Part shown: positions 1 through 41,900 of the stretch, piece by piece | Layout: each line of letters begins with the position of its first letter | Numbering within the stretch: position 1 is the stretch's first letter | NCBI GenBank assembly: GCA_964035545.1 | Contig: OZ037768.1 | Coordinates: 9,766,741 to 9,830,740, forward strand | Source: Bugula neritina | Taxonomy: Eukaryota > Animalia > Bryozoa | Direction: 5' to 3' | DNA: 64,000 nucleotides | Position numbers and translations under genes: made by a program | The notes under the pieces: model-generated | What the model was told of the DNA's origin: nothing | What the model saw: the letters and a program-made list of their open reading frames with translations, nothing else | The model's database searches: none

Positions 1-1620
1 ATGATATGCATAAAAACCAAAGGAAACTGACTGAGAAGCAACATTATTATAGTAGTATTAATATAATCACAACTACTATTAGTAATTTAGTAATAATAGT
101 AACACCATTCGTTACGTTCACTATAACTATTACCATTAGTATTAGGAAAATTTACAGTAATAGCATTAGCGAATTACAATAGAGTAAACATAGCATTAAT
201 ATTTAGACTATAGCCACAATGAGTAGACATCACATGTAATTCTAATTCAGTAATTCACCATGGACATCAGTAACTATTCAGTAACTAAGAGCTGGTCAAC
301 CTATAAGAGTAAGTTTATAATGAACAATTACTAATAGTAATTGTCAACTACTGATTGTTATTACAATTATTATTATATTGATTTAAGTTTAACCTCCAGG
401 ATTGGCCCGTCAGCTTTTTGGCGTTAGAATTGGTCATGGTGACTTTTACTTCGACTTTCAGTAATTGTGAAACTAAATATAATTAAAATATCAATGTGAA
501 TGTATAATACATTCACATTGGGCTTGGCATTCTAATTGTAATTACATTTACATTCTTATAGTTATTGTATTAATTATTAATATTTATAATTTTAAAGCGA
601 CTGATAGTAAAAACTCAAACTAGAAGTGAAATTAAAACTATTAGTAAATGGGATGAGTGAGGTAGAAAGACTAACAGCAACTCTAAGTTCCACTTGCTGT
701 CTAAGAGTAAGAGTAAGACCAGGAGGCAATAGCAACCAAAAGTCTAAAGACTAAAAGTAAAAGTAAGACTTTTTCTGTGACTAAGGGTAAGAGTAAGTGT
801 AACACTAACAGTAACACTAACTGTAATTGCAAGACTCACACCTCACACTCACTTTTCAGGCCAATAAAATTAATTTAATTTTAAAATCCAAATGATACAA
901 AGTTAAATAACAAATTTATTAGCAAAACTTGAAGTTATTAATAATTAATATTAATTATTGAAATAATTATTATAATTACAATAGAAACATTACTCATTAG
1001 CAATTGTAAGTGCAGCAATCATTATGATAAACTGGTGAAGTGATTATGATCATTATTATGATTATATTACAGTTATATTAATAGAAATTTAGTTATTTTC
1101 ATTTTATAGTTTTACTTTTAAGCTTACTACTAGTAATAGTAATACTAAGTCTAATACTAATAGTGATACTAAAAGTCAAACTTAAAGCCAATTCCAATGA
1201 CAACAAGTGAGCTTTAATGACAATCACAATTACAATACTTTGTCACAATCACGATGAGTATGACATATTCGATCTCATAGTCATAGTAAGCATCATGATC
1301 ACCATCACTATCAACTATGAGTATGACTATCAAATTCAATATTATACTTATAGCCATACTCACACTCATACTCACATAGTCACTATCAGTATCATAGTGA
1401 CGGATCATAGTCGTAGTGATATTGATAGTGAAACTGACTATAAATCACAATCACAATGTGGTAGTGGTATTCATACTCATACTCATAGTCATACTGATTG
1501 ATAGTGACATTGACTGTGGTATCATAATCATTATCATTACGAAAACAGTCAGCAGCACAAAAATATTTATTAATTACCATCATAGAAATAATGATATTAA
1601 TAAATAATATAACTATAATT
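1..1620. repeat. Degenerate hexamer-periodic tract left of the promoter core
   Basis: Units such as agtaag, actaac, actcat and atcact. The spurious ORFs here show alternating I/V/T or Y/H/D residues. Confidence 0.85.
394..437 (-). CDS. Possible first coding exon (MTNSNAKKLTGQSW) of a divergent gene running off the left edge
   Basis: An island of normal complexity inside the low-complexity tract, with an ATG at 437 in caccATG context and a donor GAG|gttaa at 393. Confidence 0.25.
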
Positions 1621-2090
1621 TGCGGTAACAGTGAATGTGGTCAACTTCAAGCCTCAATTTTACTGGGGTATCGAACGAGATCCACGCACTCAAATTCTTT
1701 AGCGAAGAAGACATTTTCAAGTGTCCAAAGCTGATCTATTGCCTGAAATCCAAACTAACTTTACCTTGTTTTAAAAATTTCAAACTAGAGTAGTGAAATA
1801 ATCAAGTCACCGAAATACTTGCAAATCTAAGGCTTTTACAGTCACATGACCCGCAATCTCGCCATTGGCCAACAAATCTCATGCTTGAACCGCCAACCTT
1901 TGATTGTCAATATTGACTATTCTGGGGAGAAATCGGCTAATAGTAATGCCTAATTTCGCTGATCACTTCGTGCTTATTTATGAATAATTCAATGTTTTTC
2001 TTTTATTCTGCGACTTTTTACAATTTTGTGTTGAATGCAATATAGTAATAGTCTGGCTTTGCTCAGTACAATATTTGTCTTTGATTATTC
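1620..2090. promoter_or_regulatory. Probable (bidirectional) promoter core of RACGAP1
   Basis: A relatively CpG-rich ordinary-complexity island between two hexamer tracts. It contains E-box GTCACATGAC at 1841, a reversed CCAAT (ATTGG) at ~1864 and a minus-strand donor-like site at 1764. Confidence 0.5.
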
Positions 2091-2099
2091 ACTTTCAGC

Positions 2100-3000
2100 A
2101 TTTTAATTTATAAATCAATCAAATTCAATGTAATAATATTAAAAATAAATATATTTATAATTTAAATTTTTGTTATTATTATTAAATTTAATATTATAAA
2201 TTAAAATTAAAATAAAATTATAAATATATGAAATAGAAAATATAATTAATAATTGAAATTAAATGATAAATTTATAATTTCACCTCAATCAATGAATTAT
2301 AATAATAACTTATAAAATAAGTAGTACTAGTACTAGTAGTAGTACTACTACTATTTATTTGTATTGTATTACTATTACTATTAGTATTAGTATTATTAGT
2401 ATAATTATAAGACTGAGTATCAGTATGAATATCTTTAAGTTTAAGTGGATAGCCATAGCGCCCATACTCATACTCATAGCGGGTCATAGGATTAGTCATA
2501 GTTAATACTAATAGTAATAGTATAAGTATAACTATAAGATTAAGTATGATATTAGCCTTAGAAGTTAGGAATTGGTGCATCTATAAAGTTGAAGTGTAAT
2601 CTTAATGATAATCATAATGTTTTTAGATTTGGTAACACTCATTCTGAATATAGCGGTAACACTAACTCAAACTGTAAGTGTTACACTTCAACTTTGTCTG
2701 TTAGTGTTAGCTACTACTACTAGTATTATAGTTATATTTTATATTATAATTAATGTTATACTTACAGTTTATAGTTGTACTTATAGTTATATATGTGGTT
2801 GTACTCACTTATACTTATAGTAGATGTAATAATCACTAAGAAATTAATTATTCATCCATACTATTAGTAATGGTAATATTCAGATTTAAACTGTTATGCT
2901 GATGTAAAATTGAATGTTAAATTTAATAAAAGTATTAGTATAACTGTGTCATTGTCTAGCATATTTCTATCACTACTACTGTTAGTAACATTACTCTTAG
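2100..3000. repeat. Degenerate hexamer tract in the RACGAP1 5' region
   Basis: agtact/agtatt/actcat/agttat runs interspersed with pure-AT blocks. Confidence 0.85.
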
Positions 3001-4097
3001 GAACTGGTTTTAACTCACATTGACCTTGGCTCGAGAACTTGCAATTCTTTGATTTAAGTCATCTTGCTAAAATCATTCACTTGGTTTACTACAAGTCTGC
3101 AACTTTTTCATTTTGATTTTGCAATTTTTCTATAAAACTTTAGTCTTAGTTCTACAGCATAAGCAATCAACTATAGTTCCCACAGTTTTAAAAGTTTTCA
3201 ATGCTTTTGCAGTTTAATGAAGTTTTAAGATTACAGTATTTATTTTTTAGTCCTAGTAATATTATTGATTGCATATTGATATAGCTAGAAGTGAATATTA
3301 CTTAACATTTGGTAAACCTGATGCAAACCGTTTTTTTTATCAAGTACTTGCAAATTGCTAAAAACCACTTTAAGTTAACGTTTAATCTTGGACTATGGGA
3401 CATGGACTTGGTGCTCTTTACAGTTCCAAGCTAAACCGGTTATTTTTATGTTGTCCATAATTTATCTCTTTGAATTATGGCAGCCTTATACTCCTACAAC
3501 TCTCTTTTGTCACTGGAAGTAGCCCTTAAAGATTAATGGCGTGGTCAAAAACTAAGCTTGTCTTATAATGAACTCATATATCAAAATTAAATATGTCAAG
3601 CAAAACTTCCTGACATTTTATTTTAATTATATTAGAATCACATGGAGAATATGTTTAATTTCAAGTTCATACTCTTTATATTTATTTTAACTCATCACTA
3701 GACCTTTTAAATTGATATATTGCAGTTGCTATTAGTGCTCATCTAACCCAATCTGTAGGTTGAGTTAAGAGCTACATTCTTTGACTATGAGACTAAAAAA
3801 ATGAAATGATGATTTCATACTTGAAATAACGCTAGTGTTGTGACATAATGAGCAAATATTTAATTGAATTTCATGATATTTGTGAAATAATATTATACTT
3901 TAAGTAATAAAAGACAAATAAATGTACATAGTACAAATATTGCTGTAAATGAAGTTTTATATATGGCTCTCTAAATTTCTAATGTTATAGGTTAAACCTC
4001 TTGTCAGCAAGTCATCTAAATACCAGTAAACAGTTTATGGTTTATATTGTCAATCTATTGTAATTGGTATTTGACTATTTAGGCTTCAATATCAGAG

Positions 4098-7000
4098 ATG
4101 GCTTCTAAAGAACTTTCTATACTTGCTCGGTATGATGATGCTAACAGACATTGCTTGTTCACCTTTCGAGAAGAAGGTAATGATAAATTATTTTAATTCA
4201 CATTTTCACTCGAAAAGTTTTAGTAACTTACTGTTCCAGCTATTTGTTCTATCCAATTGTTTGGAGTATTTGGCTTTCAATTATATTACGTTGCATTTTA
4301 GGAATGTCAAAATTTGCCATGGATGAAATTAGGAGAAGACAGATACTGCGTAAGAATAGCAAAGGAGCTATGAAGTTGCAAGAAGAACTAAAACAGGTAG
4401 GCGAGTTTTCTTTAGGTTGTGGCTGATACTGTGCGCTTTTTGTAATGGCCTGTATGTTGGACTACATGTGATGGTGTCAGCTTGGGATGACAGTTTTTAT
4501 TAGACTAAACGTTGTGTTTAATTGGTGAAAAACTTGAATTGACTGAACGATTCTATAGCACTGTATTTCAGTGTTTTAGGTTTGAATTGATATTTTAATG
4601 GTCAGTAAAGTTATAGAACAACTTATAATTGTGCTTGGTTGTTTTGTATTCACTGCAGGCTAACAATAATAGGAAGACCTTGGAATTTACTTTGGCTCAA
4701 GTAAGACTTGAGCTTGAGGAAGAGATGAAGGAAAGACAGAGATTACAGGTGGAAGTAGAGCAACTTGTAAGTGACTTTCTAACTGCAGTGTATATTAGAG
4801 TAGTTAGTTGTAGTGTAATTGTATTATTTTTATCATTATTTGACAGGCTAGACAACTGCAGCTTATCAAAGAACTAGTTGGAGATAAAAGCTATAACTTA
4901 CTCAGTGAAGATGATAGACGCAAATTGGCATTCCTCAACACTTCTCAAGCTTGCAGTGGGGGAAGTCCAAGGTTTGTTGTATTTATTTTGACTACAAATA
5001 AGTACTACATACAGAAAAATACAGCGTAATCAGCATTTTTTCCTTTTGCTTCTCTAGCATGATGGACACGGCGCTAATTGATGATTCATATTCCCTTCTG
5101 TCGGAATCTGAATATGACAAGACAGGAGATGACTTGCTAACGTCGCGTGTCAAGCGCCGAAGTAAGCGCAAATCTCACCAGAACCGAAGTGGCGAGCTCT
5201 CGGTGCCGAGGCATGTGCTCACTGATGCCACTCTGAAGAAGTATTCGAAACCACCGACGGCTCCTCCTCCGGAGAGTGAGGGGACCGGAGGAGATCTGAC
5301 TCCTCCAAAAAGAAGGCGGCTAGTCGGTGGCGAGACAGAGACTTCCGTAGATACCGAGGATAGCCTTAGGCCTGCTCCACAAACAGAGGTTAAATTGAGA
5401 CGATCAACTCGACGACATAATCGCAGCCTCTCAGCTGGTATGGTGGTTGCTATTCAGATGTGTAGAATTTATCACTTGATGCTTCAAGTTTGTTCATTCT
5501 GTGTTTAACCTGGTATATTGATCAAACTCTGCAGGACTACAAATCTCACCCTTCTATTTTTGAATTGTTGACATGAATGCTGTTCATCAGCAATAAGCTG
5601 CACTTGGTTTGCTGTAAATGCTCTGTCCTTGCTACCCTGTGCTAAACTACTCTTCAGTTACATTTGAATCTGCAGGAGCTGTGCTCTATGAAGAAGATTT
5701 GGACACAGACTCTTTCCAGAGCATCGAGCCGCGCCGTTGGACTCCTTCAATCAACCTTACCTCCGCACCTAAAGGTATCCTCAAGAAAGGGGGAGTAGAC
5801 TCACCAGCTTCACAATCACCACCCGAGTAAGTGTTGAAAATCTGCTTTGCTGAGATTGCACTGGCTGTAGGTGCTTAGGGGTTAACTTACTGATTCTGTG
5901 GTTTTAGATCACCCACACTGAAGCGCTGGGCTTCTGCCAGTAAACTTCAAAGACAGCATAATCTCTTTTTCAAGAATGTGATGAATTTAGAGGCTTGTAA
6001 ACCGTGTGGTAAAAAGATTAAGTTTAATACCAGAGCATACAAGTGTAAAGGTAAGACAATCAACACAACTTTCCCTTAAGCAAAGCCTTGTATCTCTTAT
6101 GGTAAACAGTTGTTTGCTGTGCTAACTTTGTAATCAAATATAGAACTGAAAGCACTTATAGGTGCGTTCTGTGATGTCACCAATGGTATTAATAGCGATC
6201 AACCACATTTCTGATGCATGGTGGATATTATGTTATGGGATGTGGTTATCTTCTTTTATTTGCTAATTGATTAACGAGAAATTACATATTTTCAGATTGT
6301 ATATTGTAATATTACACACATTGCTCGATTTCTTTTGGCAGATTGCAAAGAGGCGTGTCATGTTGAGTGTAAAGATCGCTTATCCCAGTTTTGCATACCT
6401 AAAGGTACTACTCCTTCCAAAGGGACACAGGGCAATATAATAAGCGACTTTGCCCCTTCTAACCCACCCTTCGTCCCTTCTATCATCTTACAGTGTGTTA
6501 ATCAGGTATTTGTATATTATTATTTATTTTGTCATGTCACAATTATTATATTGCATCGGGAAGATTTTGACTCTTCCAACAAGGTTTAAGTGATTTAAGC
6601 TCATATCTTGTATTTTAGGTGGAATCAAAAGGTTTCAGTGAAGAAGGAATTTATAGAAAATCTGGATCTGACAGGGAAGTGAAGGAATTGAAAGAAAGGT
6701 TTTTAAAAGGCAAAGAGCCAAAGCTGGTAGGCTGTTCTGTTTTATTCATTTAGAGGCTTGACTGTGAAAAATGTTTATGCGTTGGTAAGTTTGTATCTTA
6801 CTTGTTTTATGTCCTGTTTTGTTAAGAATCAAGTCCATGATATTCATGTGATCTGTGGCTGTCTAAAAGACTTCCTTCGTAACCTGAAGGAGCCGCTAAT
6901 TCCCACTTCACTCTGGGCCTCATTTGTCAACGCAGCTCAAACAGCTGACGAGTACCAAAGATTTCAGGCAGTCAGGGGCGCAGTTAAGCAGCTTCCTCCT

Positions 7001-8819: not shown

Positions 8820-9260
8820 GGAGTTGTTTTTTCTGTTAAACAATTGCAAGAAAGCGCGCATTTCTAAATATGAACTTTCACTCTTCGGTATTCCTATTTT
8901 CGTTAATGAACACACTGAGATTGTTTGTTAAAAGTTCTATTTCAATAGATGAACAAAATGGTTCTATAATCAGCTCCGAGTTGAAGGTGGCTGAAAACAC
9001 TAGTTAGCCGTTTTTAATTTTGGAGTTGGGGAATCTCCAACTACTGCACTCATTCACCCCCATGTCCGCGCTGCTTCAACCGATTTCCAACTCATTAACC
9101 GAAATAGTGTGCACATGTTCATGTTGTTCAACTGTGATTTCAAATTGTCAATTATGTTGGCTACTCAATTTTCAGGAACTTTACCCATGTTAATTCATAA
9201 TGATCTTCAACTTTTGAGCGATGTAATACGAATCAATATGTATTTGTTATTTCTAAGTCC
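8820..9260 (+). promoter_or_regulatory. Probable promoter core/5' UTR of the KNOP1-like gene
   Basis: CpG-containing island (GCGCGC at ~8854, CACATG at 9112) between the RACGAP1 3' end and the hexamer tract that precedes the KNOP1 ATG exon. Confidence 0.45.
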
Positions 9261-9264
9261 AATC

Positions 9265-9900
9265 TACCATCTATGATTATAAATATATTCATATTGATAT
9301 TGCAGCGGCCACAGCCATGAGGCTGAGCCATTGCCATGATGATGATGTGTTGATGATCGCATGATAATGATCACTTGACAATGATAATAATTAATATAAT
9401 TATTATTATATTCAATCTTCATATCATTGAATTTCATCATCATCATGATAATAATTGATATAATTATTAATATTTACTATAAATATAATATTAATAATAA
9501 TATTATTATTATTATTTAATATTTATATTCAATCTTCAAGTTCATCTTATTGAATTTCAATAATAATTATTCGTGAAATAGAATTACGGAATTAGAAATA
9601 TCAAACTTAGTAAATGTAATAGCCATAGGCACTAATAGTAATAGTTATAGTCTTTTACTTAAAACTATAAGTTATAAGTATAGTAATACTAATAATAATC
9701 GTATTATAGTAAGTATTACTAATAGACTATTGCTAATACTAATTGTTTATCTTCAATTGTTATACTTAACTTATACAATTATACTAGTACAAAACTAATA
9801 GTATTACTATTAGTAATAATAAAAGTAATACTGATATTAGTAATTATAATAGCCAGACTTATAATTATACTTATAGTTATAGTAAATGTGTTACAAACAC
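9265..9900. repeat. Degenerate hexamer tract in the KNOP1 5' region
   Basis: atgatg/ataatt/agtaat/actaat runs, with a local duplication of tattcaatcttca..ttgaatttca (~9408 and ~9526). Confidence 0.8.
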
Positions 9901-10051
9901 ATTTAGTTTGTGGATTAGAAGGATACTCATGCATTTATTTGGAATTTTATTGAGCATCTTATTTTTTTTCTTTTAGTATCTTCCAGGCAGCTGTATGATC
10001 ATTTTTTATGGCAACCTCTCAAGAAGTTCTGTAACTTGTAAAACTACTTAA

Positions 10052-13000
10052 ATGGAGGAATCTAAAGCAGGTTAGTTTGTTAAAAAGAAATTTAAGTGTG
10101 TTTCATATTCCAAAATGTTTTGCAATATTCTTTTTTGTAAAGTATTTATTGTTGTTTGTTGTTATTTAGAAAAAGTATCGAAGAGTAAGAAGAAGAACAA
10201 ACATAAGCACAAAGATAAAGATGTAATTGAAGGAGTTTCAGAAGTTGTGAATGTTGAACATGGTAAGCAAAATTTACTGCATAACCATCGCAAATAAATG
10301 GAACTAGGCAGTTTTTCTCATCAGTAATTTTTAATTAGAGCTGAGGTAATTTAGTTCATATAAATTTTAATAGAAATAGCGTTTACTGCAATGAATAGTT
10401 TAGTTGCTTCCCACAGGAATTTGTATCTAATTTTATTTGGAGTTCTTTCTGTGAGGAGAGCTATTTTGCTATGATTTGGAGTTCTTTTTTAAAATATATT
10501 TTTACTATGGTTTTTTAAATGTGCATAATTCTCAGTGTTGCTTATCTTCTTTTTTACGTTCATTCATGTTAGCAATAAATTGTCAAATTTTACGATTTCT
10601 AGAATGTTTGTTTTTAGATTTTGGCAAAAAGCACAAAAAGAAGAAAAGGCAAAGTGAAAATCCAGAGGAATTGGTTTTAGGTTGGTAAGCTGCATTCGGA
10701 TGGAAATATATTGTATATACTTAGCATAAACTGCAAATATTAATATAACTGTCTTGTCGTATTATAGAATATATATAATATCTGTCAGTTCTACATTTCT
10801 CTCTTGTCTTCATCGTCACATTTGTAAATTGATTTTAGATGATATGTCTTGTAATGTAGAATTTACTGAATATGGGAACTGTTTTAGAGGAGAGCCAGTT
10901 GAGTACAAAGAAGAAAGCGAAATTGAAAGACTTGGAAGATGGTAAGAGAAGTAATTGTGAAGGGCCTATCATCTTTTAGAATTAAATGTGAATTATATTC
11001 CGCGTAATGAGGACGTCAAAACATAAAAACAAAATGAAGTGAAACTTAAGATAATTTAGTATTATTTAGGTTTACCAAGTTACATTGTGTGTATCGGATA
11101 TTACCAAGTATATGACTTATAGACAAATATCTCTGCAAAAGTCCTGCTTATTAAAGTTTTCACTAATCATCGTATGCCCAGCAATCCTAGCTAGAACACT
11201 GGTAGTGAAGTCGTATACTCATGAAAATGTGTAGAGTATATTTGTTATTTCTAGGAGATGAAAATCTCCTTCAACCAAAGAAAGAAAAGAAAAATAAAAA
11301 GAGCAAGAAATTGAAACATGACTGTACTGGTAAGAAAGTTATCGATTGTACTGAAATTTGTTCTCACCTATCTCCGATTTGTCCTGGTCGGGTAGCGGGA
11401 TCGATTGTACTGAAATAACCTATTATAAAAGATTTGCTGATCGGGGAGTTGTCTTCTTATATTTATGTCTGTTAATGACATGCATTATTATACTTGTATT
11501 TTTACTGTATGTTTTGTAGATGTAGATGAAAATTTAGTCGAGCCAAAAGAGAGAAAACGTAAGAAAAAGAAGTTACAACATGAACATGAAGGTTAAGTAG
11601 TTATTTCGCTTATCACCTCAACAAAATATATGAAATAGTTTTCGATGTAAGTGCAAGGAGTTGTTTTTCTTTTTTCGTGCATCAGCTGAACAATAAAATT
11701 ACAAAATAAGTTTTTAAATGCATTTTTACCTAATATCAGTAAGCACTGCTCTAAAAGTTATTGTGTGAGTGTAACCCACTCTAGAGGTTCATGGGTATAG
11801 AATAGCATATGATATGAAATAAAATAGAACAGAGTTGAAATATAATTTGCACTTGTCATTCAGTTTGTGTTATAAAGTTTACTTATAAGTAAATTAATGT
11901 TTGCTAGAATTTGTATGGGGTGTCTAGTCTTGCTTGCTTTGTGAGACTTGATTAAAAGAAACTTTTAATAGTTTTCAGTCATCAGCAGAGTAAGATATTT
12001 TATTATTAACATTTAATTTAATTTGTCACGTGTGTATGTATTTATAGATGTAGATGAGAATCAAGTAGAGTTAGAAGAAATTCCTTTTAAGAAAAAGAAG
12101 TTGAAACGAGATAAATATGCAGGTTGCTTAATACTTGTATCTTTCATTTGTAAAACTAATAAACTTCAGTGTTCATTGTAATTATATATAGCAGTAATAC
12201 AACTACTTGACTGTATAAGTATTCCTATTGGCTGTCGTTAATTTTTATAGAAAACGAGTGTGAAGATGAATTTGATGCCGAGAGGACTGCCGATAGTGAA
12301 TCAAGTTAGTATATACCATAAGTTTTTACTGCTTTTTAATAATTTTAATAAGTATGGTTGGTTAGGAATGCGACATTCAGATGTATTCTTATGTAATTTA
12401 TACACTTTAATCACAACATTTTAAATTATCATGTCTAACGAAATTTGACTGTTTATCAAAATTAGCAAAAACACAGCAATAATACACTCAAGGTTGACAC
12501 TTTATAGCATAAGCATATCATAGCGCTAAGCTTATGTGCCAAGCTGATAACCTTATTATTATTATATATATGAGAAAATTGTTAGTTGTCGGTTAGTTAT
12601 ATCTTGACCAAGACTTTGCTCTCTTCGGAGTAGAGAAAATTTTGCATAAATTGAATAACTAATTCTTTTATAGAAGAAAGAAAAAAGAAGAAAAAGCGTT
12701 TAAAGAAAGCTGATGAAGTTCCTGTGACAGGAAATGATGATGAGACCAACACTAGTCAACCTGTAAATGTAGGTCAATGGAGCACAGCTGAATTGGGCGA
12801 TGCTCAAAGACAAAACAAGTTTTTCCAGCTTTTAGGAGGATTTAAGAAATCATCTGAAAATAACAGCACAGTGTTGTCTTCAGCTGCTAACTCAGCACTA
12901 AATAAAGCAAAGGAATCTGCTTTGAACACTCGACTGGAAAAGCAGTTTGAAAATGCTAGGCATACTCACTTAAATGCTAAAGGATTTGGTTTGGGTTTCT

Positions 13001-13062
13001 CTCAACCTAAAGCTAATTCAATTGATATATATTCTAGCAAATCTGTAAAGTTTGATGATTAG
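10052..13062 (+). CDS. KNOP1: Lysine-rich nucleolar protein 1 / small acidic protein (SMAP) domain protein, ~297 aa; exons 10052-10070, 10170-10262, 10618-10680, 10888-10941, 11255-11329, 11520-11591, 12048-12122, 12251-12304, 12674-13062
   Basis: K-rich short exons all splice in phase 1. The last exon encodes GQWSTAELGDAQRQNKFFQLLGGFKK...LEKQFENAR...GLGF...SKSVKFDD, which matches the SMAP-family C-terminus as recalled for KNOP1. Confidence 0.85.
11358..11399. mobile_element. 42-bp insertion flanked by a 17-bp direct repeat (probable heavily truncated non-LTR retro-insertion)
   Basis: ATCGATTGTACTGAAAT occurs at 11341-11357 and 11400-11416, flanking a GC-rich 42-mer. Confidence 0.6.
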
Positions 13063-13628
13063 TGGAACAATTCAAAATCAATATCTAAATCTGTACATGT
13101 AAACTAACTATTCAGTTATGGTTTTTTAAAATATTTTAAAATCGCATTTATAGAATAATTGGTTTGCAAATCAGTTTAATTATGACACCATGTAGTTTTT
13201 ATAGAGTGTTATTGTTCAAAATGCATGCTAAGTAGTACAAAACACACTAAAACTAATTTATAGTAATAAATCTTAATGATGTATACCATAGCCTAATAAT
13301 AATCACACCAAAATAATATTGTGGGTGATTGGAGTAAGCTAACTTTGCTAACAACAAGCCAGCATGCTATATTCTAGAATCTAGCTAATATAACAATTAT
13401 TAGTTTGATGGAGACTTGTTTACTAAAATATAATATAAGGTTGAATAGATCATATTTATAGCAAAGGTCAAGCTTCATTAATTAATGATCTGGCTGGCTA
13501 GATAATTAATTATCTTATTCTCCAGCAAGGTTGATTGTGGCATTCGTGGTGCTGTCCAATAATAATTAGTAAGCATCACAGTAATTTTGGCAATATCTAT
13601 TTTATTATCAGCTTGGTTTCATAAATCA

Positions 13629-15155
13629 TTAATTGGTATTTTTGTTGGTCTTTCGAAAAAACCATTTACGTCTTTTGCGTTTTTGGTGCAAGCTAGGTTG
13701 CCTGATCATTTGAGTATTTGTTGCTTGAAGATAAATTGAAGATTCTATACTATCGCTATCTGATAAAGCTGTTAGACGTGATGAACAAAGTCTTGCAGCG
13801 AAGTTCCACCGTGAGAGTTTTCTTCTCTTCCGTTTTCTTTTTCGCATTGTATTAATTTGATATCTTGAAGTGCTGAATTTCATTAGTGTACCTTTGGGTG
13901 TGCTATGTGCCAGGGGTGTTCCAATTCCCGAACTGTTAGTTTTACTCCTCCGATCACTGTTGGAGTTAACTTTCATAATTGAAAATGAGTTATTGGAAGA
14001 ACTCATCTTGTGATTGGCTGAACTGACTAAGCCCTCTGATATAAGAGCCTCTAGTCTATTTATAGCATTAGTACATTTGTCAATTATTTGGAAACTGTTT
14101 GAACTTTTACAGGTATTTGCTGTGGTAGCATCTGTAGAGACTGGTTGCTTAGTAAGCTCTAACTTCTGTGATGTGCTGCCTGGTTTTTTGCAACTGTTTC
14201 CACTTCTTGTTCTTTCTAAGAAAACGGCATCTGTCTCATTGTTTAATTTCTCTCCACAATCAGTGCCAACATCACATGTCATAACAGACTGCATCCTCTT
14301 GGTTTGTCTCTCATTAAAGTTTCTGACCAGTTGATCTAGTATTGTATGTTCATACTCTGCAGGTAGAATCTGTAGTATATTACCTATTGATATTCTCGCA
14401 TCCAGTAGTTGCAAAGACGGTTTCCTATATTCTTTATTGACAAATGCATCAAAGCACGGGCAGGTTTTTGCTAGCTTTTCATGGAGAAGTGGTGGTAGCG
14501 AAATTACTAATCTCAATAATTGGTGAAATGTGCCTTGAAAACTTGTGAAAATTATTGTAGATGGTGTCTGGTCATAAAGGTGACAGATATTGCTGCAAAA
14601 ATAGTTAGAATTAAAATTTAGCGAAACAATATAAATTTACACACAATTTCTCAATCTATAGTTTAATTATTATAATCAACAAATTTCTTAGGTAGTAAAG
14701 GTACAGCTAGAGATTGCAATGTGTGGTTATATTGGTAGCCATTTTATGTCAGCTTACCTACACAGGTTAGATATTAGCTCTTTATGCTCATCAAACGAAA
14801 TGCAGCCACTCATTTTTATTTCATGTTTCAAACTAACAACTTGCTGCCTCAAACTAGCATTTTCCTTTACTAGTTTTGTGGACTTGCTTGACCAATGCTC
14901 TGCCAGTGTCATTAACTCGGTATTCTTACTTTGAAGCTCTTTCACTCTATTCTTGAGTTTTCTTAGTGCTGTCATGCTAGTTTGGTAAGCGTTCTTCAAA
15001 GTGTCAACTGAAATTTACATAAAAGTCATTGCTTTCAGTTAGGCTTTCATCCTGTATTCAGTAGAAGCATATCAATTTTATCAAGTTAACAATTTATTTA
15101 TTTTCTACCTACAGTCTTGTGTAGAAATCTGCACTACGGCTTCCTTTTGATCCAT
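13629..15155 (-). CDS. Uncharacterised ~418-aa protein (N-terminal coiled coil, helical middle, S/T-rich linker, basic NLS-like C-terminus); coding exons 15155-15113, 15007-14758, 14592-13629, with probable 5' UTR exons further upstream (donor-like sites ~15459, ~16033, ~18814)
   Basis: The track ORFs 14754-14999 and 13629-14516 join in frame via AG|gtaag..gcag|C. The upstream exon MDQKEAVVQISTQD joins in phase 1 using the donor T|gtaggt. No family recognised. Confidence 0.7.
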
Positions 15156-16435
15156 GGTTGAAATTGGTATCCAAAGGTCTTGCTTATCTGTATAAAAAAT
15201 CGTCTGCATACAACATCAATTTTATTATCAATAGACTATAGCTTGCCAAGCATATATTTTATGTATCTTTTAAGGCTAATTGAACTATCAGCTATCAATA
15301 AAAAATAACTGTAGTCTATATACAGAAAGTAGTAGAAAATCTTTTAATTAGGGCATATTGGTAATAATCATGAAGTTGTTTTAGAAGTTAATATAATTCC
15401 CAATTGCTTTCTCTGTAAAAACTCATTGTGGAACTTGTTTTGAGTGATACAAAACTTACCTGAATCTTAGGAGACCCCACTAGTTCCCTCTGGCTGAACT
15501 CAAATAGCTATGCTAAATGGCAGTGTTTTTGGCTGATTATAATTCATCATGTCAGCATGATTAGTATCATTGTGCCTGTTTGACCAATAAGTTACCTATT
15601 AGTACAGAGCATAATGAGAAAGTAATGCTGACAGGCTTTGCTATTTTCTAATGATACTGTTATAATTAGTAGACTATTTACCAGGTGATTAATAAGCAAG
15701 ACAGGTACTGGAATATAAACATGTGTGAAATTGCAGCTATGTGATTGGTCAAAGTAATGAGGTTATGTAAAAGTATTCTGTTAGTAAAATATATTTCCAG
15801 CAACAAAATCTACAGACTAGTAGGCCAATCAGGGGTGTGTTCAAACTCTAATATCTCACCATTATAACTTATGCAAAATTCTGCCAGCTCAAGTGCGAAA
15901 TGCACAAAGTTCTAAAAAGTAGTTGTGCAACATTTGTTACTGCGTTATTTTATTTCATGTCTTAAAATTATGAGTTTACAGTTCATTTTCTCAAAATTTC
16001 TAAATTAAATGTTTAAAAGTTCAATCAAAACTTACATGCCTACAAAACACAGTTTTACCACAACTCCAACGCTGCTGCATAACGTACTTAATTTTTTTTG
16101 GCAAATTGTGGTGAATAAGTCTGGTTTTCTAGAAGTTGGGTAATCGCTGAATTCCCTAAGATTGGCTATCCATACTGATTGATACTTGTATCTGTTTGGC
16201 CTAATAATTCATAGTTTATATAGTCTACAATGATAATGCAGGCTAAAGAATTGCGTTACCCGTAATAATATTGCAGCTTACTTCACTATGACAATATTCT
16301 GGTTAGTGACAGGCTGCGATCTGGCATGGTTCTTCCTACTAAGAACCCTAAATCAACCACCACTGCTGTTGATATTGTAGAGCAGTAGTGAAGTCACTGT
16401 ACTGTGAGAGCAGTGCTACACCATACTCAACAAAA

Positions 16436-16533
16436 CTATACGCACACAAACACACACACACATATATATACACGTAAGTACATATATATACATACATACA
16501 TATATATCATATACATACATATATACATATATA
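16436..16533. repeat. (CA)n/(TACA/TA)n compound microsatellite
   Basis: Direct reading. Confidence 0.85.
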
Positions 16534-17712: not shown

Positions 17713-18230
17713 ACACATATGTATATACATATCTACATATTGTGATGGATTTTAGTAGTGCAATTCTTATTATATTAATCGAAAAGGTTCACTCTATATT
17801 GTTTATTATCTTGTGAGTTCGACCCTGTCGGATTGTAACTATGGACAGCAGTGGCACCACTAGTAACCACCAATCAGGACAGTCATGCTAATGGATAGCA
17901 GGTGGAGCTAGCTACTCATAGTTGCAGTGCGTTGAGTAGCTAGCCGGCAGAGCAGCTCGGGACTTCATTTAGAGTAGTTGTGTATTAAAGCTCACTAATT
18001 ATATAATCGTTTTCTATTCATGTTAGCAGTAAATAACCTTCTTAAATTTGTGTAAATAATAAAGTTATCTTAGCGTAAATAATCTGGCGTAGTGGCTTTG
18101 ATTAAGTCGACCCACACATAATAATAGTGAACTGGCAAAATTCACTACAATATACACATATGTATATGCATATCTACATATACACATAATTATGTATATA
18201 CATATCTACATGTACACATATGCATGTATA
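17713..18230. repeat. ~28-bp minisatellite (acacatatgtatatacatatctacatat), ~3.5 copies, interrupted by the solo LTR
   Basis: One unit lies before 17741 and further units follow 18153. Confidence 0.75.
17741..18149 (+). mobile_element. Solo LTR (409 bp) with 4-bp TSD ATAT
   Basis: TGT...ACA termini with imperfect short inverted ends (tgtgatggatttt / aaaattcactaca). ATAT flanks both sides, AATAAA sits at ~18057, and the element interrupts a 28-bp tandem repeat. Confidence 0.75.
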
Positions 18231-18315: not shown

Positions 18316-18317
18316 TA

Positions 18318-27400: not shown

Positions 27401-30400
27401 GGTGTGTATTCACACTTGGTATAACTGTAACACTATACTGTTGAGTGCAAGCCTAGTTAAATGCTGTTTACTCAAACCTGTTCAATGTTCTAGAATCTAG
27501 TGTAAAATATAGTGTATTCTGTTCAATAGGAATTCCCATTTCATGCATTTGTAAAATTATCTGTGGTTTAATTAGTAGATCAGATTTATTTTGTAGTAGT
27601 TTATTACAAATTTAGCTTTAAGTTTATAATTTATATAAAGTATGTTACCTTAAGTTGGTGAGTGCACGTGATGACATTGTGGTTTGCAAAGAAATCAGGA
27701 ATCAAATTGATTAAATTAGTTAGAGCAGGTATAACTTCCTCAATATAACTTGCAAAGTTTCACAAAAGCACTTCTTCAAATGAACAATTGTACCTTAGAT
27801 ATTACAGGTGTATGAAGGCAGCCTCTACACAGTATAAGCTGTACTTTGCAGTAGACATATGATCACCCCTCTTTGTTGATTCAAAACTGCAGCTCACAAG
27901 TTTTTTCAATTCAAGAAGTAGCTTGTAGTTATAAGCTATAAGTAACACACTGCTGGAAATATAGTGAAACTGATAAGCCTATAAAGGATATCATTGGCAC
28001 TTGAATAGTATTTCATTGTACAACTTGAAGTTTTGTTTTCCATGATGAAGAACTCTCATTGTGACTGTATATAGACTGGTAGACAAGTAAGGATTGTTTG
28101 AATAATTTTAGGGCAGTTGTAAGTATAGCTGGTGAGCCTACACTAATATCCCAAGATTTCACTCCTGAAACAGAGAGAAGACGACTTCAAAAGATGGCAG
28201 AACAACACCCCGACCTACTAGCCGACGAGTTCTGCCCACTTCAATTTGCTCAAAGAGTAACTCGAAAAGATGTTGGCACTCAGATGCTATTCAGAGACTC
28301 CGGAATGGAGGGCTGGTAGGATGACATATTCAATTCATCTTATAACGCTATGTTAGTGTCGGATGTGGTTTAATTATACGAATATAATTTGTTTCAATGT
28401 GTTGATATATAAAGTAATTTGCTGATGTTTGCACTGAACACTTTATTTGTATGTAAATTATTCTAGCATTTACTGTAGCGGGGAACAGGTTCAGAACCCC
28501 TCATATAATATGAGTTATTAAAGATATTGAAGATGATCTAAATAATTGAATTTTGAATCGATCCAATGAATTGTTTGCTGTTGATTTTTGTAGCTTGGGT
28601 TTTATTTTAAAGGGCACATAAGGAAGTAGTAGAGAAAGACTTGCGGTTCCCTATGATAATGGGGGACGGAAGACGATCCCGACTACTTGCCACTATTGGA
28701 CTGACGAGAGGACTAGGTGACCATAATCTCAAAGTTTTTGATTCAGCAATACACATTAAACCATTTCTATCCTGTACTCCTGAGGTATGGATTCACTCAT
28801 GTCAACTTAATATTTATCTGTATAGCAAATAATTTTATCTAAATCATGTCTATTCTTTAATAAAGATTGTTTGTGATATGGTATTGGTGGAGTTGGGAAT
28901 AAAGAAATGTCATGTAACGTTCATTGCATGTTAGTTGTATACTTTCAGGTGCAAATATGTGACTTGAGTGAACATGAGTCATCTCTCACTCCCAATGATG
29001 TCATAATTTTGGGTTCAGATGGATTGTGGGATGTAACTACTAATGAGCAAGCCTTATGGATTGTCGACAATATATTGCGTTCTCTACCTGTTAGTGACGA
29101 TTCCAGGTAATCATAAATTTTATTAGTTTTGAATTTTTGCTCTTATGGAAAGTTCTGAAAATGGAAGTAGGATTATTTTTATAAACTTAAAATACACGAT
29201 TTCTAAATCACTCTGAATGTAATTTATTAAAATAATCTATTAAGCTTAAGGCCTGGCCACACACTGGTGAGAATCACACAAAATTCGTGTGAGAAATGTC
29301 ATGAGTTATCTTCTCGTTATGACCAGCCACACGTTTGTCAGACGAAACACGTAATAAATAGTCTGTGAAGAAGTCTTGCACGAGATACAAACAGCAAAAA
29401 ATTGCCAGACACAGAAACGTGGTAGAACTGAAATAATCACTGTTGCTAAAATTCTATTGACTGATCAAATGGTGCTTATCGTCACTTGCGCTCTTTTGTC
29501 CATCATCTTTGGTGGGTGCACCCAGCGAACACGATTTCGTATGAATTCTCTTATATTTGATCATACGTTTGTGTTTTCGTGTAAAATAGATGATTTCGTC
29601 TGATTCTCACGAGTGTGTGGCCAGGCCTGTATTTATATTTTTGTTTTGTGGATATGATTAGCTTAGATTCATTAAATGGACTAGATGTTAGCTTCTAGTT
29701 TTAGGTAAGTTTTCAGCTGTATGTTTTACTATAACTATTCAAATCTTATGTTTCCTTTAGATAATGTAAAACTTTAACATCATTTTTTTGTCATGGAAAA
29801 TCGAATTATAGTTTATTGTTGGTGCAAAAGTTGCAGTAGGTCGGGAAAAATAAGAGGAAGTTGCTGCCAATCAGTATCGAGGCGCCAAAATCAATTATTA
29901 CTTTACAGTATCATCTCATTTGTTGAATATTAAACTTTGTTTAAGCTTAAAAGAATGTTATAACATGACTTAATATGCTTATCTAGTCATACTTAGGGAG
30001 TCAGTTTGTGAATATCCTGTTTCAGATATATTGCGGCAGCACAGGCTTTAGTTGCACATGCAAGAGGCAGACAGAAGGTTGATCGAAAGGATGTTTGGAT
30101 GCTAAAAGACTCAACAGAATATGCTTCTCATGATGACGTCACGTGTTTTGTTATTCCTTTAACAAATCGTACTATCTGGACTGACACTCCTCCAGAACCT
30201 AGCGATGCAGAGACAGGAAGCAGTAAAGTAGAAACAGTTATGGCCGACTTAGATACCAGCAGTTGCTCTGGTGATCTCTCGAAAACGGACTATGTTGAGG
30301 TAGAAAGTGTGAAAGATAAGTTGGTTAATGGTGAAACAATAAATTCCGATAAGCCTCGCCATGAAGAAGAAAAAGCATATTTGAGTCCACTAAATGACAC

Positions 30401-32859: not shown

Positions 32860-35800
32860 ATGTTGAAAAAGGCAGTCCCTGTTTTTCAGCCTCAGAGGTA
32901 AGCTCAACTTTGCTTTTTAAATAACTAAAAGATGTTAGCATAACAACCGAAGCGAGCTAATTATAATAGAATTAAATGAATTATTAATATTATTATTATA
33001 ATTAATATTATGGATAATAATTATAATAAAGTTAAAATAACCTATAATAATAATTAAAATAAAAATGAAAATCATCACAGCTTGAGGCGGTTACTTAAAG
33101 TTAATGAATTTAAAATCATTTAGATATTTATGTTACTTATTATATTTAAAATGATTTGAATTTAATTTTTAATATACCTAGATTTTTAGTTCAAGACTCA
33201 AGTTGCAACTTGCATGAGCATAATGATAATCATAATGATACCTGTCGATACCTGTCGATGTTATTTCCACACTGGACCTCCCTAGAGGGAAGAAGGGGTG
33301 TGCCTCGTATAAAAAACTAAGTTGTCAGTACTTGGACAGTAGTCTAAAAAGTGTTAACATTCTTGTGCAGATTAACTTAACAGGCTAACTAGCCTGTCTG
33401 TGTGTGATCAGTGCTGATCCTCATATCTCTTATTGTTCGTGGGAGAAAACTATAAAGATACCCATTCCTGTTCGCTCTCACTGATCTGGGAAATCCTGAA
33501 ACCTGAGACCGAGTCTGTACAGTGCTTGTGGTCCGCTGATCTAGAAAATCATCATAGGCAGCACTCGGAGTTGGATGTTGTTCTTCCTTAGACAATATTT
33601 TTAGGAGAAGGCTGATGCGTCGGCTTTTCCTCCTTAGATCAAGCGGCTCCAAACACAGCTTTTTCATCTCCTCCCCAATATCGGTTCTTCCTTCGCTGTT
33701 AGAGATAAAACGCACAGCATCTGTTTGAACATTCTCCATTATACTTATATGATTTTTGCTAGATGGGTCCCAGGCTGCACTGGCATATTCCCAGTGTGGG
33801 AGACAGAGGGCTTTGTAGGCAATAAGCTTTGCTCTCCTGGGGGCCCAGTAGAGTGCACGTTTTATCATACCTAATTGCCGTTTTGCAACAAGAACCTTTT
33901 TTAGGATGTGTTGGTCAAATTTACAGTCTGATTGCAGTGTTACACCAAGGTATTTTGTTGAGTCAACATGATCCAACACTGATCCACTAAGCTTGTATTG
34001 GGGAGTGTCGGTCTTAGGGTTAAAGCTGATTATCTTGCTCTTGGAGATGTTGAATGACATTCCCCACTTATTCGCCCAAGTACTAAGAGAGTCCATAATG
34101 ATAATTATAATAATCATAATGATAATATTAATATTAATGAATATACTAATACTAATAGTAATTAGTAATAAGTTAAAGTATTAACTATAAGTAATACTAA
34201 TAATCATTATTATTATTATTATATTCCTTATCATTATGATTATGCAGCTGGAACTATAAGACTTATAGTTATAGTTATAGTTATACTAAGACTCTTAGTA
34301 TAACTATAACTATAAGTCTTATGAGCATTATCATTATCATTATGACAAAATTCGAATTTAATTTTTTAATAAACTTACTCTTAGTAAGAGTAAGTTTATT
34401 AAAAATTAAATTCGAATTTTGTCATAATGATAATGGTAATGCTTATTTGTTGTTATGCTAATGTTTATTCTCATTGTGATTTTGCCAAAATAGTTTTGAA
34501 TAAGTTCAAATTGATTGTGAAACAGAGTGATTTTCAATTAGTTGAGTAAATTAAGTCAAATCGGAGGTGTCGACAAGAAATGTCAAACGTCAGAGCTAGC
34601 AGCAACTTGAGTCAGTATGATTTGAACACAACTGCCTTGTGTCTCTTAGTTTTCATGTAACATTATGTTTTGGCTGTCATTGTCATTGTGGTTATCTTAA
34701 TTGTAGTTGAGATTGTGTATTTAAATATATATTGTCATATTCATTAGATTTAATTGATATAAATTATATATCACTCAAATAGTATTGACAAAGTTATACT
34801 GGCATAGTTATCTAAAGGGTTTAATATACGCAGGCGAAGGCTAATTACTTTTAATGCCAAGTCACCACGAATCATGTGAGGTTTTTGTTACCATAGCTTA
34901 TCTTTGTTTATGCTTATTTTCAATTGGCGCTCTTACTATTGTAATTTTTTATATTTTCCAACATATGGCATATTTTAATAATGTGATTTTCATTATGTTA
35001 TTTTAGCTGTCAAACAAGGAATATGGCTACCTTGAAAGATAGTGAGTATTACTTTTTCTTTGTTCATATCATTCGAATATTAACTGTGGAGACCATTAGT
35101 AATCCTACTAAACATGATTTCCACTAAAGGTTTTTGCTGAAGCAACACACTTTGCAGTTTTTTTAATGCACTTGTTTACATATTGCTCTAATAACTCCTT
35201 GTTCCAGAATTTTATTCCTGCAACTTTTTTCACAACTTCTTGATAATGTGAATAATGTCAAAATAATTTGTTGCTTTTAGTTTTACTTATTAATTATTAG
35301 CTTTGTTTTCTCTATACATGTTTCACTTGAAAGTTAATGTGATTATTGAAGGTCATTAATAAATAACTGTACGTATTATTTCACCAGTTGCGACTAGATT
35401 AAAGTCAGTAAAGAATATTCAGAAGATTACCAAATCTATGAAGATGGTGTCTGCAGCTAAATTTGCCAAAGCTGAAAGAGAGTTGAAGCCTGCTAGAGTT
35501 TATGGAGCAGGGGCTACAGGTGTGTATGCAGTATTCAAATATTCATATGCATCTTCTCTTTCTACAGATTGCTTGAGAGTTGTATGCTCAAACAATTTTG
35601 TTTGATATCAATTTTTTGCTTATGTTGATGATGTTAAATTGTTAATTGTTAAATTTCATGGCATGCTATTCTTAGTTATACAGTTTACAAGTTTACACTG
35701 GTTTTTTGTTAGTTTTAATATGACATTGTTGTCATTAAAAAGTATTTTAATTTAGTTATTTATGACTCTGAGAGTGTTTGATAGTTGACCGTCCAATCAT

Positions 35801-38749: not shown

Positions 38750-38983
38750 CTGGTGTATAACGTTTCTAGCGGTTAACTTCCACGTGTATCTGTTTACCAA
38801 CGACACTATTTCCTACCGCCATGTTTCCAAATCATTAGTTGGTTTTTCTTAATAGAGATTTATTTAATACTCGTTTGGCGTCAGTTTCGGGCTGGGCCTT
38901 TCTCCTATGCCGATTAATTTTATGCCAACACGCTTGTAACTTCAGCAATATAGTAAATAAAAATGAGCTAAAAAGTTGCCAGT
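38750..38983 (+). promoter_or_regulatory. Promoter core/5' UTR of the pericentrin-like gene
   Basis: CpG-rich island with CACGTG at 38781, immediately upstream of ATG 38984. Confidence 0.5.
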
Positions 38984-41900
38984 ATGGCTGATGTGGACTC
39001 AAAGGCTGCTGAAAAAGCCAAAAAAGTAGCTGCAGCTAAAAAGAAGGTTAGGATTCGTATCACTTTCAGTATTTTGATTTTCAATTCTGTATTCAGTATT
39101 GTAATTCACTAATTGAGTTTGACTACAGACTAGTCAGTAGTCACTAGTGGCAGTGCGAGTCTGAGTGTCTAACTATGATTATGACTATGTGAATGTCTAT
39201 TCAGTTTCATAATGATATTGTCTATTGAGTATTGACTATCACTATGTCTAACCTGGTTAGAATTTTAACTGGAAATGAGTGTCACTTTGACTTTAACTTA
39301 CACTTACAGTTTGAGTTACACTCATAACACTGTTACTGTTAGTGTTAGACTTAGAGTTAGTGTTGCAGTAACATTTATTTTTATCTTTATCAGTTTAAGA
39401 CTAAGTGTAACTGTGACTGTGAGCTTGTAACTTGCAAGTGTGATTGTAAATCAAAATGTAAGACTAAATTTAAATTTAATGAGTCACGGATTGACTTACG
39501 AGACTCAGACTAAAACTAAAAGTTCAATAACTATAAGCTTTAGCAGTGAATGCATGATTTTGTAATTACTTTAGTTGTAGTACTTGGTCTGCATAATACT
39601 AATAGTAATTAATTATGTAATGTTATTTTGCTTTGAATTATTATTATTAATGATTTAATCTCACTATGAAAGTAATCATAATGGTAAGGAAACTCAAACT
39701 GCTCCTAGTCCTATTATTATAGCACCACTAATATTATTATTAATAAATGTTAACTACTAAATTTATTGAATTATTTCATGTTACACAAACTATAAGTATA
39801 GCTACCAGTTGCTAATTAAATTAGTAAACGTGGAAATATCAAAAGGAAGTGAAATTAATTAATAATCTTTAACACTAAGCCTAATAATTATGTTGACAAA
39901 AGTGTTGCTTTACTCTAAGTACAATTTCACAGCTTCTTGGCTATTGAAAACTATTACAGTCAATACTAAGTAGACAGATTGTTACCATAACAAAATTGAA
40001 ATTTAGCTCAATATGAAATTAAGATCTTAACTTTAAAACCGCCATTTATGGTTATAGGTTAATGGTTATTAAAATGAAAACTAACGTTATGCTTTGCTCA
40101 CTCAGTTATAAATTTATTTCCAGTGTTTTTATTTCCCATTCAGTTTCTGCTATATTCTTCTATATTGTGGCAGTAGGATTATTTAACCAAACTATTTGTG
40201 TTGTTGATGATTTATTTGCTGTTGCTATTAACAGCATCTAAACTTGTCATATTAAGTAAAATTAACAACAGTCATTGATTTAAATCATATACAGTTTAGG
40301 ATTAAATTAAAAGTGTTGTTTGCAAAAGACTTAACACTAAACACTCAAAATTGTAATTACATTGTAATGAGTCTAATTCATAAAAAGCATATTTAATGAT
40401 ATTTTGTTAACTAAATAAAATTAGGTTGTTACAAAATAGTGAGTTATAATCATAATATGCTAGAAATTGTAATCTCTAACCCTTGTAAGTAATGGCTAAA
40501 GTTTTTAATTGGTAGATGCAAGATATTCCATGGTAAATATTAGTGAATAAGTTTCAGCAAACTAAAGCAAAGTTGCAACATTTTTGTGAGATCAACCAAT
40601 GTACTATTATTAAGTGCCAAAGGGTAGAATTTACATTATACAACAGTTTTAGAATAGAAAATAGTATTACTATATGGATTCATGTTGTGAACTGCACTCT
40701 TAAGTTATATTATATATTTATTTAAACTGTTTTGCTCAATAGCTCAAAAAGAAGGCAGTTCACTATATGAAACTATATATTAGTGGTATTTGTATTCAAC
40801 CAAATAATAGACTTTCACATATATGCTAGGAGCTCCATGCTACAAAGGTGACATCATGCACTTTGAAACAATAAGCAATATAATTTGAATGTATAAGATT
40901 CTTGAAACCTTAGATTTTACTAATGTTTATTATTAGTATTGCTATTGTAAATTCAGGCATGCTTAATACAATAAAACAAATATTATTTTAGTTGGTTCAC
41001 TATAACAAATTCACAAGTATGAGAACATTACCAATATTTGTAGTGAGTAGCTGGTCAAAATTTAGTCTAGCTGAAAAAATAAGTTTATAGTTTATCTAAA
41101 GACATATAGCTGCTGAATTGCAGTTGTCCAAAATGTGTGTAGTTTGTTTGATGCTAAGCCAAGTAAATATCCACTGTTTTAGAATATAGCGCTTTTTAAG
41201 GGTTGTATGAAAATGCCACTAGCTGTTGGTTTAGTAATGACTTTTACAACTAACTTTTCTCTCGCCTAAAGATTATATGTCCGTTCAAATTTTGAGCCAA
41301 GTGTAGTCCACTAAAATTGCCCAAGTGTGGAGTAGATACTGTGTAACTAACTTTATGTTGTTACTTTGGCAGTTGGCGGCATATCGGAAGTCAAAGAAGC
41401 CTAAAGCTTCCTCTCCATTAGTAGAAGGAGATGAAATTTCAGACACAACTTCTGAAGCTTCCTATTCAGTGGTAAGAGACAGCTTCAACTGACTAAAACT
41501 TGCAACATTGTCAGCATTCTTAGGCTAATCTGATTTTCCTGATATTTAGAGACTATTGAAATAGTGTATTAAGTAAGACCAATTCTAAAGTTGAATCCTT
41601 GTAAACATTTTTCACTTTTGTTTTAAATGTTGATGAAAATTTTAGGCATATCAGCATTTAATGGGGATATTTTGTTATTCCTGTTTATTTGTTTTGTGTT
41701 CCAGTCGAGTGATGTAGCCTCTATCATTAGTGTTGATGATCGATCTACTCCTGTAAGTATAGCTGCTCGCAACTTAAAAGCTCTGCATAGCAATGTCAAC
41801 TCAGTACTCTATATACGTATGCATCCTGTACACTAATTGTAGATACGAACATAGATAATGACACCTTATTTATTTATTCAAACCCGGTTTCTAGTAATCT

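Follow-up and report, generated by a model that had tools for sequence, protein, structure and literature searches.

The stretch of DNA considered here is a 64,000-nucleotide window of the genome of the bryozoan Bugula neritina (contig OZ037768.1 of assembly GCA_964035545.1; C4:9766741-9830740 of the 216,009,554 assembled bases), and the subject is a class of non-coding sequence within it: AT-rich tracts, 0.4-1.6 kb in length, with an ACT or AGT at intervals of six bases. A preliminary description of the window had listed six tracts of degenerate hexamers keeping an A-N-T phase, one at the 5′ end of every conserved gene, and had proposed that a process coupled to the transcription start site (TSS) generates or selects them. 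All six tracts are real. They sit at gene 5′ ends, and in the two genes in which the first intron can be read they fill its 5′ part. The tracts were delimited with a period-6 caller, which takes the identity at a lag of six bases minus that at lags 4, 5, 7 and 8 in a 120-bp window. The features on which the argument turns are the following, numbered from the first letter of the window.

18-1588, no strand: tract beside a head-to-head promoter, on its PAN2 side, from the period-6 caller.
1589-2129, no strand: core of ordinary complexity between two tracts, a putative bidirectional promoter with a CCAAT-like sequence; its observed-to-expected CpG ratio (CpG o/e) is 0.88, against 0.45 locally.
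2130-3023, no strand: tract on the side of a RacGAP-like gene, from the caller.
4083-4176, plus strand: first coding exon of the RacGAP-like gene, ATG at 4098, with C1 and RhoGAP domains further on and a junction in an RNA contig.
9251-9920, no strand: tract from the caller, followed 130 bp downstream by the ATG exon (10054-10072) of a Lys-rich plus-strand gene.
19223-20296, no strand: tract upstream of a PP2C-type phosphatase gene and downstream of a GC-richer core at 18880-19222, from the caller.
32861-32898, plus strand: exon 1 of ATP5F1C, with the start of the presequence and the donor GTAAGC, read from the sequence.
32960-33241, no strand: left part of the ATP5F1C intron-1 tract, AT-rich with few ACT/AGT; the caller's own call is 32991-33241.
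33392-34180, minus strand: reverse-transcriptase open reading frame (ORF) fragment inside the ATP5F1C intron-1 tract, with a weak RVT_1 match; not tract sequence.
34051-34491, no strand: right part of the ATP5F1C intron-1 tract, from the caller and from reading of the sequence.
38986-39047, plus strand: exon 1 of a large coiled-coil, pericentrin-like gene, with ATG and the donor GTTAGG, read from the sequence.
39068-39749, no strand: intron-1 tract of the coiled-coil gene, rich in ACT/AGT from ~20 bp past the donor; the caller's boundary is 39155.

PAN2 lies on the minus strand, its first coding exon 1.3-1.7 kb to the left of the window, and the 540-bp core that separates it from the RacGAP-like gene is relatively CpG-rich and flanked by a tract on either side. 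The frame of ATP5F1C exon 1 runs into exon 2 (35007-35043), where the mature gamma subunit begins with its conserved ATLKD. The caller recovered every one of the six tracts. The fifth, placed at 32960-34450 by the preliminary description, is present, but it is not continuous, being split by the minus-strand reverse-transcriptase fragment, and its left part is poor in ACT/AGT. That fragment is an open frame of 263 aa (242 aa when counted from an ATG), with an RVT_1 match at E=0.005, below the curated cut-off.

The periodicity of the tracts is readily measured. Identity at lag 6 is 0.45-0.55 in the six tracts, compared with a background of ~0.28, and on ten block shuffles the caller returned 0 bp in eight and ~150 bp in the other two. 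Spacings from one ACT/AGT to another peak at 6, 12, 18, 24 and 30 bp, with 245 pairs at lag 6 where ~80 are expected; within the window these spacings have no clear lag-3 peak and no 10-bp signal. The grammar can be written as A-[C/G]-T followed by three bases that are alike only locally. After decoding of the phase, 80% of units have A at position 1 and 81% have T at position 3, shares which lean on the phase-decoding model, whilst position 2 is C in 34%, G in 32% and A or T in the remaining 34%. Positions 4-6 are AT-rich and match the next unit only about half the time, and the same variable half is found in 20% of adjacent units. The phase slips about once per 34 bp, with a mean in-phase run of ~5 units, and ATT/AAT occupy one third of the ACT/AGT slots. 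The G+C content of the tracts is 0.22-0.29. Read on the sense strand of the adjoining gene, ACT and AGT occur in the ratio 406:424. Thus the grammar is strand-symmetric, C and G being used in about equal shares whichever way transcription runs, and a signal at the RNA level, such as branch-point or 5′ splice-site-like hexamers, is rejected on this ground.

What the tracts have in common is a grammar and not a shared ancestral sequence. The 1.57-kb tract contains just two exact direct 12-mer repeats, and a 361-bp piece of tract finds matches in the genome of only 40-200 bp at 68-95% identity, from which it follows that the tracts are not a repeat family; the absence of alignable homology had been observed correctly. 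Tandem Repeats Finder reports only arrays of 2-15 copies inside them, with 68-90% matches and periods of 6, 12, 18 and 24. With two true satellites left out, inverted and direct 12-mer matches are about equally common, the inverted ones at roughly four times the level in AT-matched control DNA. A perfect palindrome of 20+20 nt with a 1-nt centre lies at 19634-19674, inside the PP2C-side tract, and two long near-perfect palindromes, also with a 1-nt centre, abut one another at 34256-34446, in the right part of the ATP5F1C tract. Single strands of the tracts fold more stably than neighbouring intron DNA, with a mean minimum free energy of about -15 versus -6.5 kcal/mol per 150 nt and z-scores down to -4.

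In ATP5F1C and the pericentrin-like gene the tract starts ~20-110 bp past the exon 1 donor (~60 bp in ATP5F1C) and ends well before the acceptor. At these two genes the DNA upstream of the promoter is free of tracts. The earlier statement that each tract abuts a promoter core thus fits, with the qualification that in the two readable cases the tract lies on the transcribed side, in intron 1. Between exons on the same strand, tracts coincide with the start of a new gene in every readable case in the window. No tract was found in the internal introns of the window, including dozens of introns across 40-64 kb, as had been stated, and there is none in other introns of similar composition in the tract-bearing genes themselves.

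A second sample, one 200-kb stretch of chromosome 1 (C1:10.0-10.2 Mb), brought the DNA available for counting tracts and gene gaps to 274 kb in all. Coding strands were called here with a codon log-odds model trained on the exons of the window, and its calls are concordant with Pfam matches (DDT, RhoGEF/RhoGAP and cadherin exons). Tracts occur in 4-5 of five robust divergent gene gaps and in none of six robust convergent gaps (Fisher's exact test, by hand, p ~0.002-0.015). In divergent gaps they are usually paired around a core of 350-600 bp, an arrangement also present at three sites in the chromosome-1 sample. CpG o/e is 0.54-1.0 in the cores beside tracts, 0.42-0.45 in the region and 0.34 in the tracts; such CpG retention is what unmethylated promoters would be expected to show. 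The proposed coupling to gene 5′ ends is borne out by these three lines of evidence, namely the intron-1 position, the divergent gaps and the CpG-enriched cores. The claim that every conserved gene bears a tract was too broad: about six of the seven or so gene starts in the window have one, whilst some 5′ ends in the chromosome-1 sample do not. It is therefore most gene starts that are followed by such a tract, in the first intron where this can be read. A cadherin gene and a BCR-like gene have a tract at their 5′ side, which shows that the feature is not confined to housekeeping genes.

A genome-wide score of the phased motif had been suggested as a check. Runs of five ACT/AGT in 6-bp phase number 69,224 in the genome, compared with 11,141 occurrences for the reversed motif, 11,240 for a period of 7 and 5,721 for a period of 5. 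The chance expectation, calculated from the 4.2% frequency of ACT/AGT in the window, is a few tens. Among the matches listed, those at periods 5 and 7 are regular tandem arrays of 5- and 7-bp units. All 51 five-unit phased runs of the 274 kb fall inside called tracts, which make up ~5% of that DNA. By rough extrapolation there would be ~10,000-30,000 tracts per genome, for a gene complement of ~20,000 (PMC11480708). Satellites with 5-, 7- and 3-bp base units (C1:100200-100519, C1:51240-51543 and C1:257036-257224) also mix ACT and AGT in otherwise identical units, and thus the C/G swap is not confined to the 6-bp tracts.

The oddest element of the grammar is the central base. Where neighbouring units in the 274-kb sample have identical positions 4-6, the central base is the same in 47 pairs and different in 67 (67/114). 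Genome-wide, neighbours carrying AAT at these positions (n=26,174) divide into 5,886 CC, 9,039 CG, 7,270 GC and 3,979 GG, 62% being different; for neighbours carrying CAT (CC 1,049, CG 1,095) the figure is 51%. There is no positive correlation of the central base at lags of one to three units. The central C or G does not descend together with the other bases of its unit. In contigs aligned to the PAN2/RacGAP locus, C<->G changes made up 9 of 234 variant places, with none among the best-supported ones in the tract, in a spectrum that is noisy and contaminated by contigs cross-mapped from other tracts. Since neighbours with identical flanks differ whilst C<->G changes are rare, the central base would be set when the unit is made and not scrambled later by point mutation. 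Fast C<->G flipping was rejected on the strength of the same variant spectrum, and slippage of higher-order units of 12 or 18 bp was rejected on the lack of positive correlation at lags of two and three units. These statistics also imply that slippage of single units is not the main builder of the tracts. A change of unit size does occur: an alternative contig, probably from the source sample, carries a 6-nt insertion, ATCATA, at about window position 1520, inside the PAN2-side tract.

Taken together, these observations are best accounted for, with a probability that we put at about one half, if the tracts are lineage-specific promoter-proximal DNA produced by a strand-symmetric process which adds units at the DNA level near the TSS, followed by AT-biased decay. 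Recurrent local gain and loss of 6-bp units would build the tracts, with fold-back (inverted) duplications accompanying unit addition. The central base would be fixed independently at the birth of each unit, perhaps when short complementary overhangs pair with a G.G or C.C mismatch that is then resolved, or by non-instructed insertion at a gap, in either case between a fixed A and a fixed T. AT-biased decay would then convert ACT/AGT to ATT/AAT. The process would be linked, in the germline, to chromatin that is open or transcribed, immediately past the TSS and over approximately the first kilobase. The exact sequence of a tract would turn over fast and carry no code, whilst its bulk properties, namely AT-richness, a period out of phase with the helix and a tendency to form hairpins, may later have come to matter for chromatin at the first nucleosomes.

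Two of the mechanisms put forward in the preliminary description bear on this scheme. Templated insertion or template switching receives partial support from the near-perfect palindromes, the parity of inverted and direct 12-mers and the 6-nt haplotype indel. A mutational signature driven by base modification is disfavoured, as point mutation would produce no 6-bp phase and C<->G changes are as scarce as described above. Fast turnover is hinted at by a contig of a divergent strain, from a 2016 'symbiont metagenome' run, which matches the core at 1525-2078 at ~93% (36 differences and 11 gap letters in 554 nt) and does not match the tracts on either side. The contig may derive from a divergent Bugula lineage.

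Several points weigh against a unit-adding process of this kind. Where two successive units have the same central base, the next unit differs from them in ~73 of the first 100 cases among the matches listed, which indicates that the central base is not simply random and that selection or repeat instability also shapes it. The arrangement xyz-A[C/G]T-xyz is not enriched outside tracts (0.025 versus 0.026 overall), and no isolated single 'birth' events were seen there. The position of exon 1 is taken from coding sequence, in two genes only, and no first-exon junction for PAN2 or the RacGAP-like gene appears among the contigs at their core. Finally, the comparison of 5′ with 3′ ends is made up of 11 gene gaps and leans on a purpose-built strand caller.

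The alternative which survives best, and which we regard as a possible if doubtful account, is that the tracts are a selected cis element: either a series of weak sites bound by a lineage-specific protein, or a spacer with a structural role, each of which would keep the first intron open. The protein might be a dimer reading a pseudo-palindrome with a free central G:C pair, and the spacer might act through unstable or mobile nucleosomes, 6 bp being out of phase with the helix; parallels could be drawn with the CpG island, with the periodic A/T clusters (PATCs) of Caenorhabditis elegans and with plant signals for intron-mediated enhancement. The tight, recurrent position beside promoters speaks for such an element, as does its presence at the 5′ side of genes as different as those for the cadherin and the BCR-like protein, which do not belong to one gene class. 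That every array keeps its A at position 1 and its T at position 3 within an otherwise variable unit, and that C and G are used equally regardless of strand, can be read in the same way. Furthermore, a preference for dyad symmetry would predict both that runs of equal central bases are avoided and that alternation is stronger beside AAT, which is compatible with a palindrome (62%), than beside CAT (51%). Against this, selection that accepts either C or G leaves it unexplained why neighbours with identical flanks differ when C<->G changes are rare, and neutral decay of young units could equally leave A and T in place at ~80%. The tracts cannot be aligned to one another, and in the divergent-strain contig it is the core and not the tracts that is matched.

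The preferred reading, an addition of units near the TSS, also has a bolder form. The tracts could be the product of a previously unknown, dedicated germline DNA transaction in which an enzyme drives the addition of 6-bp units round an A-[C/G]-T joint with an untemplated centre, and they could have become a sequence-encoded promoter-proximal chromatin domain doing the job of the vertebrate CpG island, in Bugula and perhaps in other animals. This we consider unlikely, albeit worth stating.

Ordinary microsatellites, or cryptically simple DNA arising by replication slippage and gathering in long, weakly constrained, AT-rich first introns, would account for the short arrays with periods of 6, 12, 18 and 24 and for the one-unit haplotype indel, which is a whole-unit length polymorphism of the kind that slippage produces. 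One pure (ACTCAT)n array is also present elsewhere in the genome. Under this explanation neither the TSS nor the motif would have any special part. Slippage copies whole units, yet the central base differs in 51-62% of identical-flank neighbours genome-wide, and the explanation has already been largely refuted by these central-base statistics. Nor would slippage by itself be expected to hold a single A-S-T frame (S being C or G) across all arrays and 69,224 phased runs, to spare introns of similar composition in the same genes, or to start within ~20-110 bp of a donor and stop well short of the acceptor. It is improbable as the principal cause.

Less probable again are the excision footprints of a cut-and-paste transposon favouring promoter-proximal open chromatin. 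In this model, a special case of unit addition, each round of insertion and excision would deposit a duplicated 3-bp target and three bases from the element's ends, the middle one drawn from a mismatched overhang pair, and would yield a 6-bp unit with a fixed A and T, an independent central base and a variable half that stays constant locally. The number of fixed events required would run to millions, however, and in fact only 20% of adjacent units agree in the variable half. A search that was not exhaustive found no element with ends of this type or with 3-bp duplications, the isolated form of the footprint is not enriched outside tracts, and the avoidance of equal central-base runs is not predicted.

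The remaining candidates, a dispersed transposable element or satellite family or an artefact of assembly or base-calling, can practically be set aside: the summed contig depth over tracts is very high and two true satellites were caught by the period-6 caller in the chromosome-1 sample (both recognised and excluded), but there is no alignable consensus, genome matches are short (68-95%), exact 12-mers are rare inside tracts, no terminal repeats bound them, and the same kind of sequence appears in contigs of four runs from three studies, 2015-2023, which speaks against an artefact of one platform. The material compared here was contigs, and thousands of contigs from elsewhere in the genome are drawn onto the tracts.

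The grammar of the tracts matches none of the nearest known systems, each of which has one or two properties in common with it. The PATCs of C. elegans have a period of ~10 bp in phase with the helix, consist of A/T runs found throughout the introns of germline-expressed genes, and have a demonstrated anti-silencing role. They were reportedly described by Fire and colleagues in 2006 and by Frokjaer-Jensen and colleagues in 2016. Both they and the Bugula tracts are lineage-specific, degenerate, periodic non-coding sequences which cannot be aligned, lie in the introns or flanks of many genes and are known by their grammar only; the Bugula tracts differ in their 6-bp period, their A-[C/G]-T motif, their place at the 5′ end of intron 1 and the lack of a 10-bp signal. 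Cryptically simple DNA, said to have been described by Tautz, Trick and Dover in 1986, and promoter-proximal microsatellites resemble the tracts in their scrambled short motifs, unit-number polymorphism and enrichment near gene starts. In the tracts, by contrast, one trinucleotide frame extends across tens of thousands of arrays and the central base is not copied with the unit.

As with CpG islands, the tracts amount to a compositional promoter mark in the DNA itself, and the cores beside them retain CpG. The tracts do not qualify as islands, being poor in G+C and in CpG, periodic and situated on the transcribed side. Immunoglobulin switch regions are G-rich pentamers that form R-loops, are strand-asymmetric and serve programmed recombination at a handful of loci. 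The likeness lies in kilobase stretches of degenerate short repeats, a place in the intron just downstream of the promoter and first exon, a strand-symmetric motif and shaping by breakage and repair; the Bugula tracts differ in that they are not G-rich pentamers, are strand-symmetric and are abundant genome-wide.

Footprints of the Tc1/mariner type offer a closer parallel for the central base. Those of Sleeping Beauty have the form TA-C[A/T]G-TA, the central base deriving from either end (PMC6943129), and they have in common with the tracts a short fixed triplet, a central base with one of two complementary values and duplicated target flanks. They are single 5-bp scars at TA sites, however, whereas here no matching element, duplication rule or isolated scar was found. 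The first-intron enhancement signals of plants are described as redundant, dispersed, degenerate and active only in promoter-proximal introns (PMC8157754); unlike the tracts they appear to be neither periodic nor based on ACT/AGT.

The tracts do not behave as protein-coding sequence, given the lack of a lag-3 peak, the strand symmetry of ACT/AGT and their location in introns of known genes. They contain no long, high-identity array of one unit or of a higher-order unit, as a satellite would, and there is no Rfam match or tRNA in the window to suggest a structured RNA or a tRNA-derived repeat. Full-text literature searches found no published description of such tracts, and the Flustra genome paper makes no mention of simple or tandem repeats.

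A number of other features were recorded in the window and beyond it. The call of the period-6 caller at 18140-18420 was rejected, being a plain (AT)n/ATAC microsatellite and not the ACT/AGT grammar; it belongs with ordinary ATAC-type and (AT)51 microsatellites at 16452-16537 and 18140-18420, before the core of the PP2C gene, which the caller partly caught. On the minus strand at 13632-15014, between plus-strand genes, lie an open frame of 335 aa and a coiled-coil open frame with coding-like codon usage; these frames have no convincing Pfam family and no tract at their presumed 5′ side. Three adjacent open frames at 25010-25800, on the plus strand in an intron of the PP2C-type gene, resemble, by eye, remnants of a Tc1/mariner-type transposase.

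In the RacGAP-like gene an RNA contig splices 4081-4174 to 4300-4397. In an RNA contig the ATG exon of this gene is joined on its 5′ side to 21 nt which do not occur in the window but stand at nine places on five contigs. Two copies share ~70 nt upstream and nothing downstream, so that a spliced-leader gene is not clearly present; candidate identities for the piece are a repeated 5′ exon, a chimera and a sequence resembling a leader. Many small unplaced contigs (C101, C110, C66, C160 and others) carry intronless Ras-family genes with several in-frame TAA/TAG, a ciliate-code pattern that probably points to an associated or contaminating protist.

The meaning of the tracts for the biology of Bugula depends on which of the readings holds. 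If they are a scar, they document mutation of a strong and site-specific kind just downstream of TSSs, following a rule (six bases per event, with A and T constant on either side of an untemplated C or G) that is not predicted by slippage, deamination or any of the repair signatures considered. They would then provide a natural read-out of germline DNA events at active promoters. If instead they are selected, they would represent a new way of writing "gene start" in DNA, in a phylum with almost no functional genomics. In practical terms, the signature could serve to flag first introns and promoters in the annotation of bryozoan genomes.

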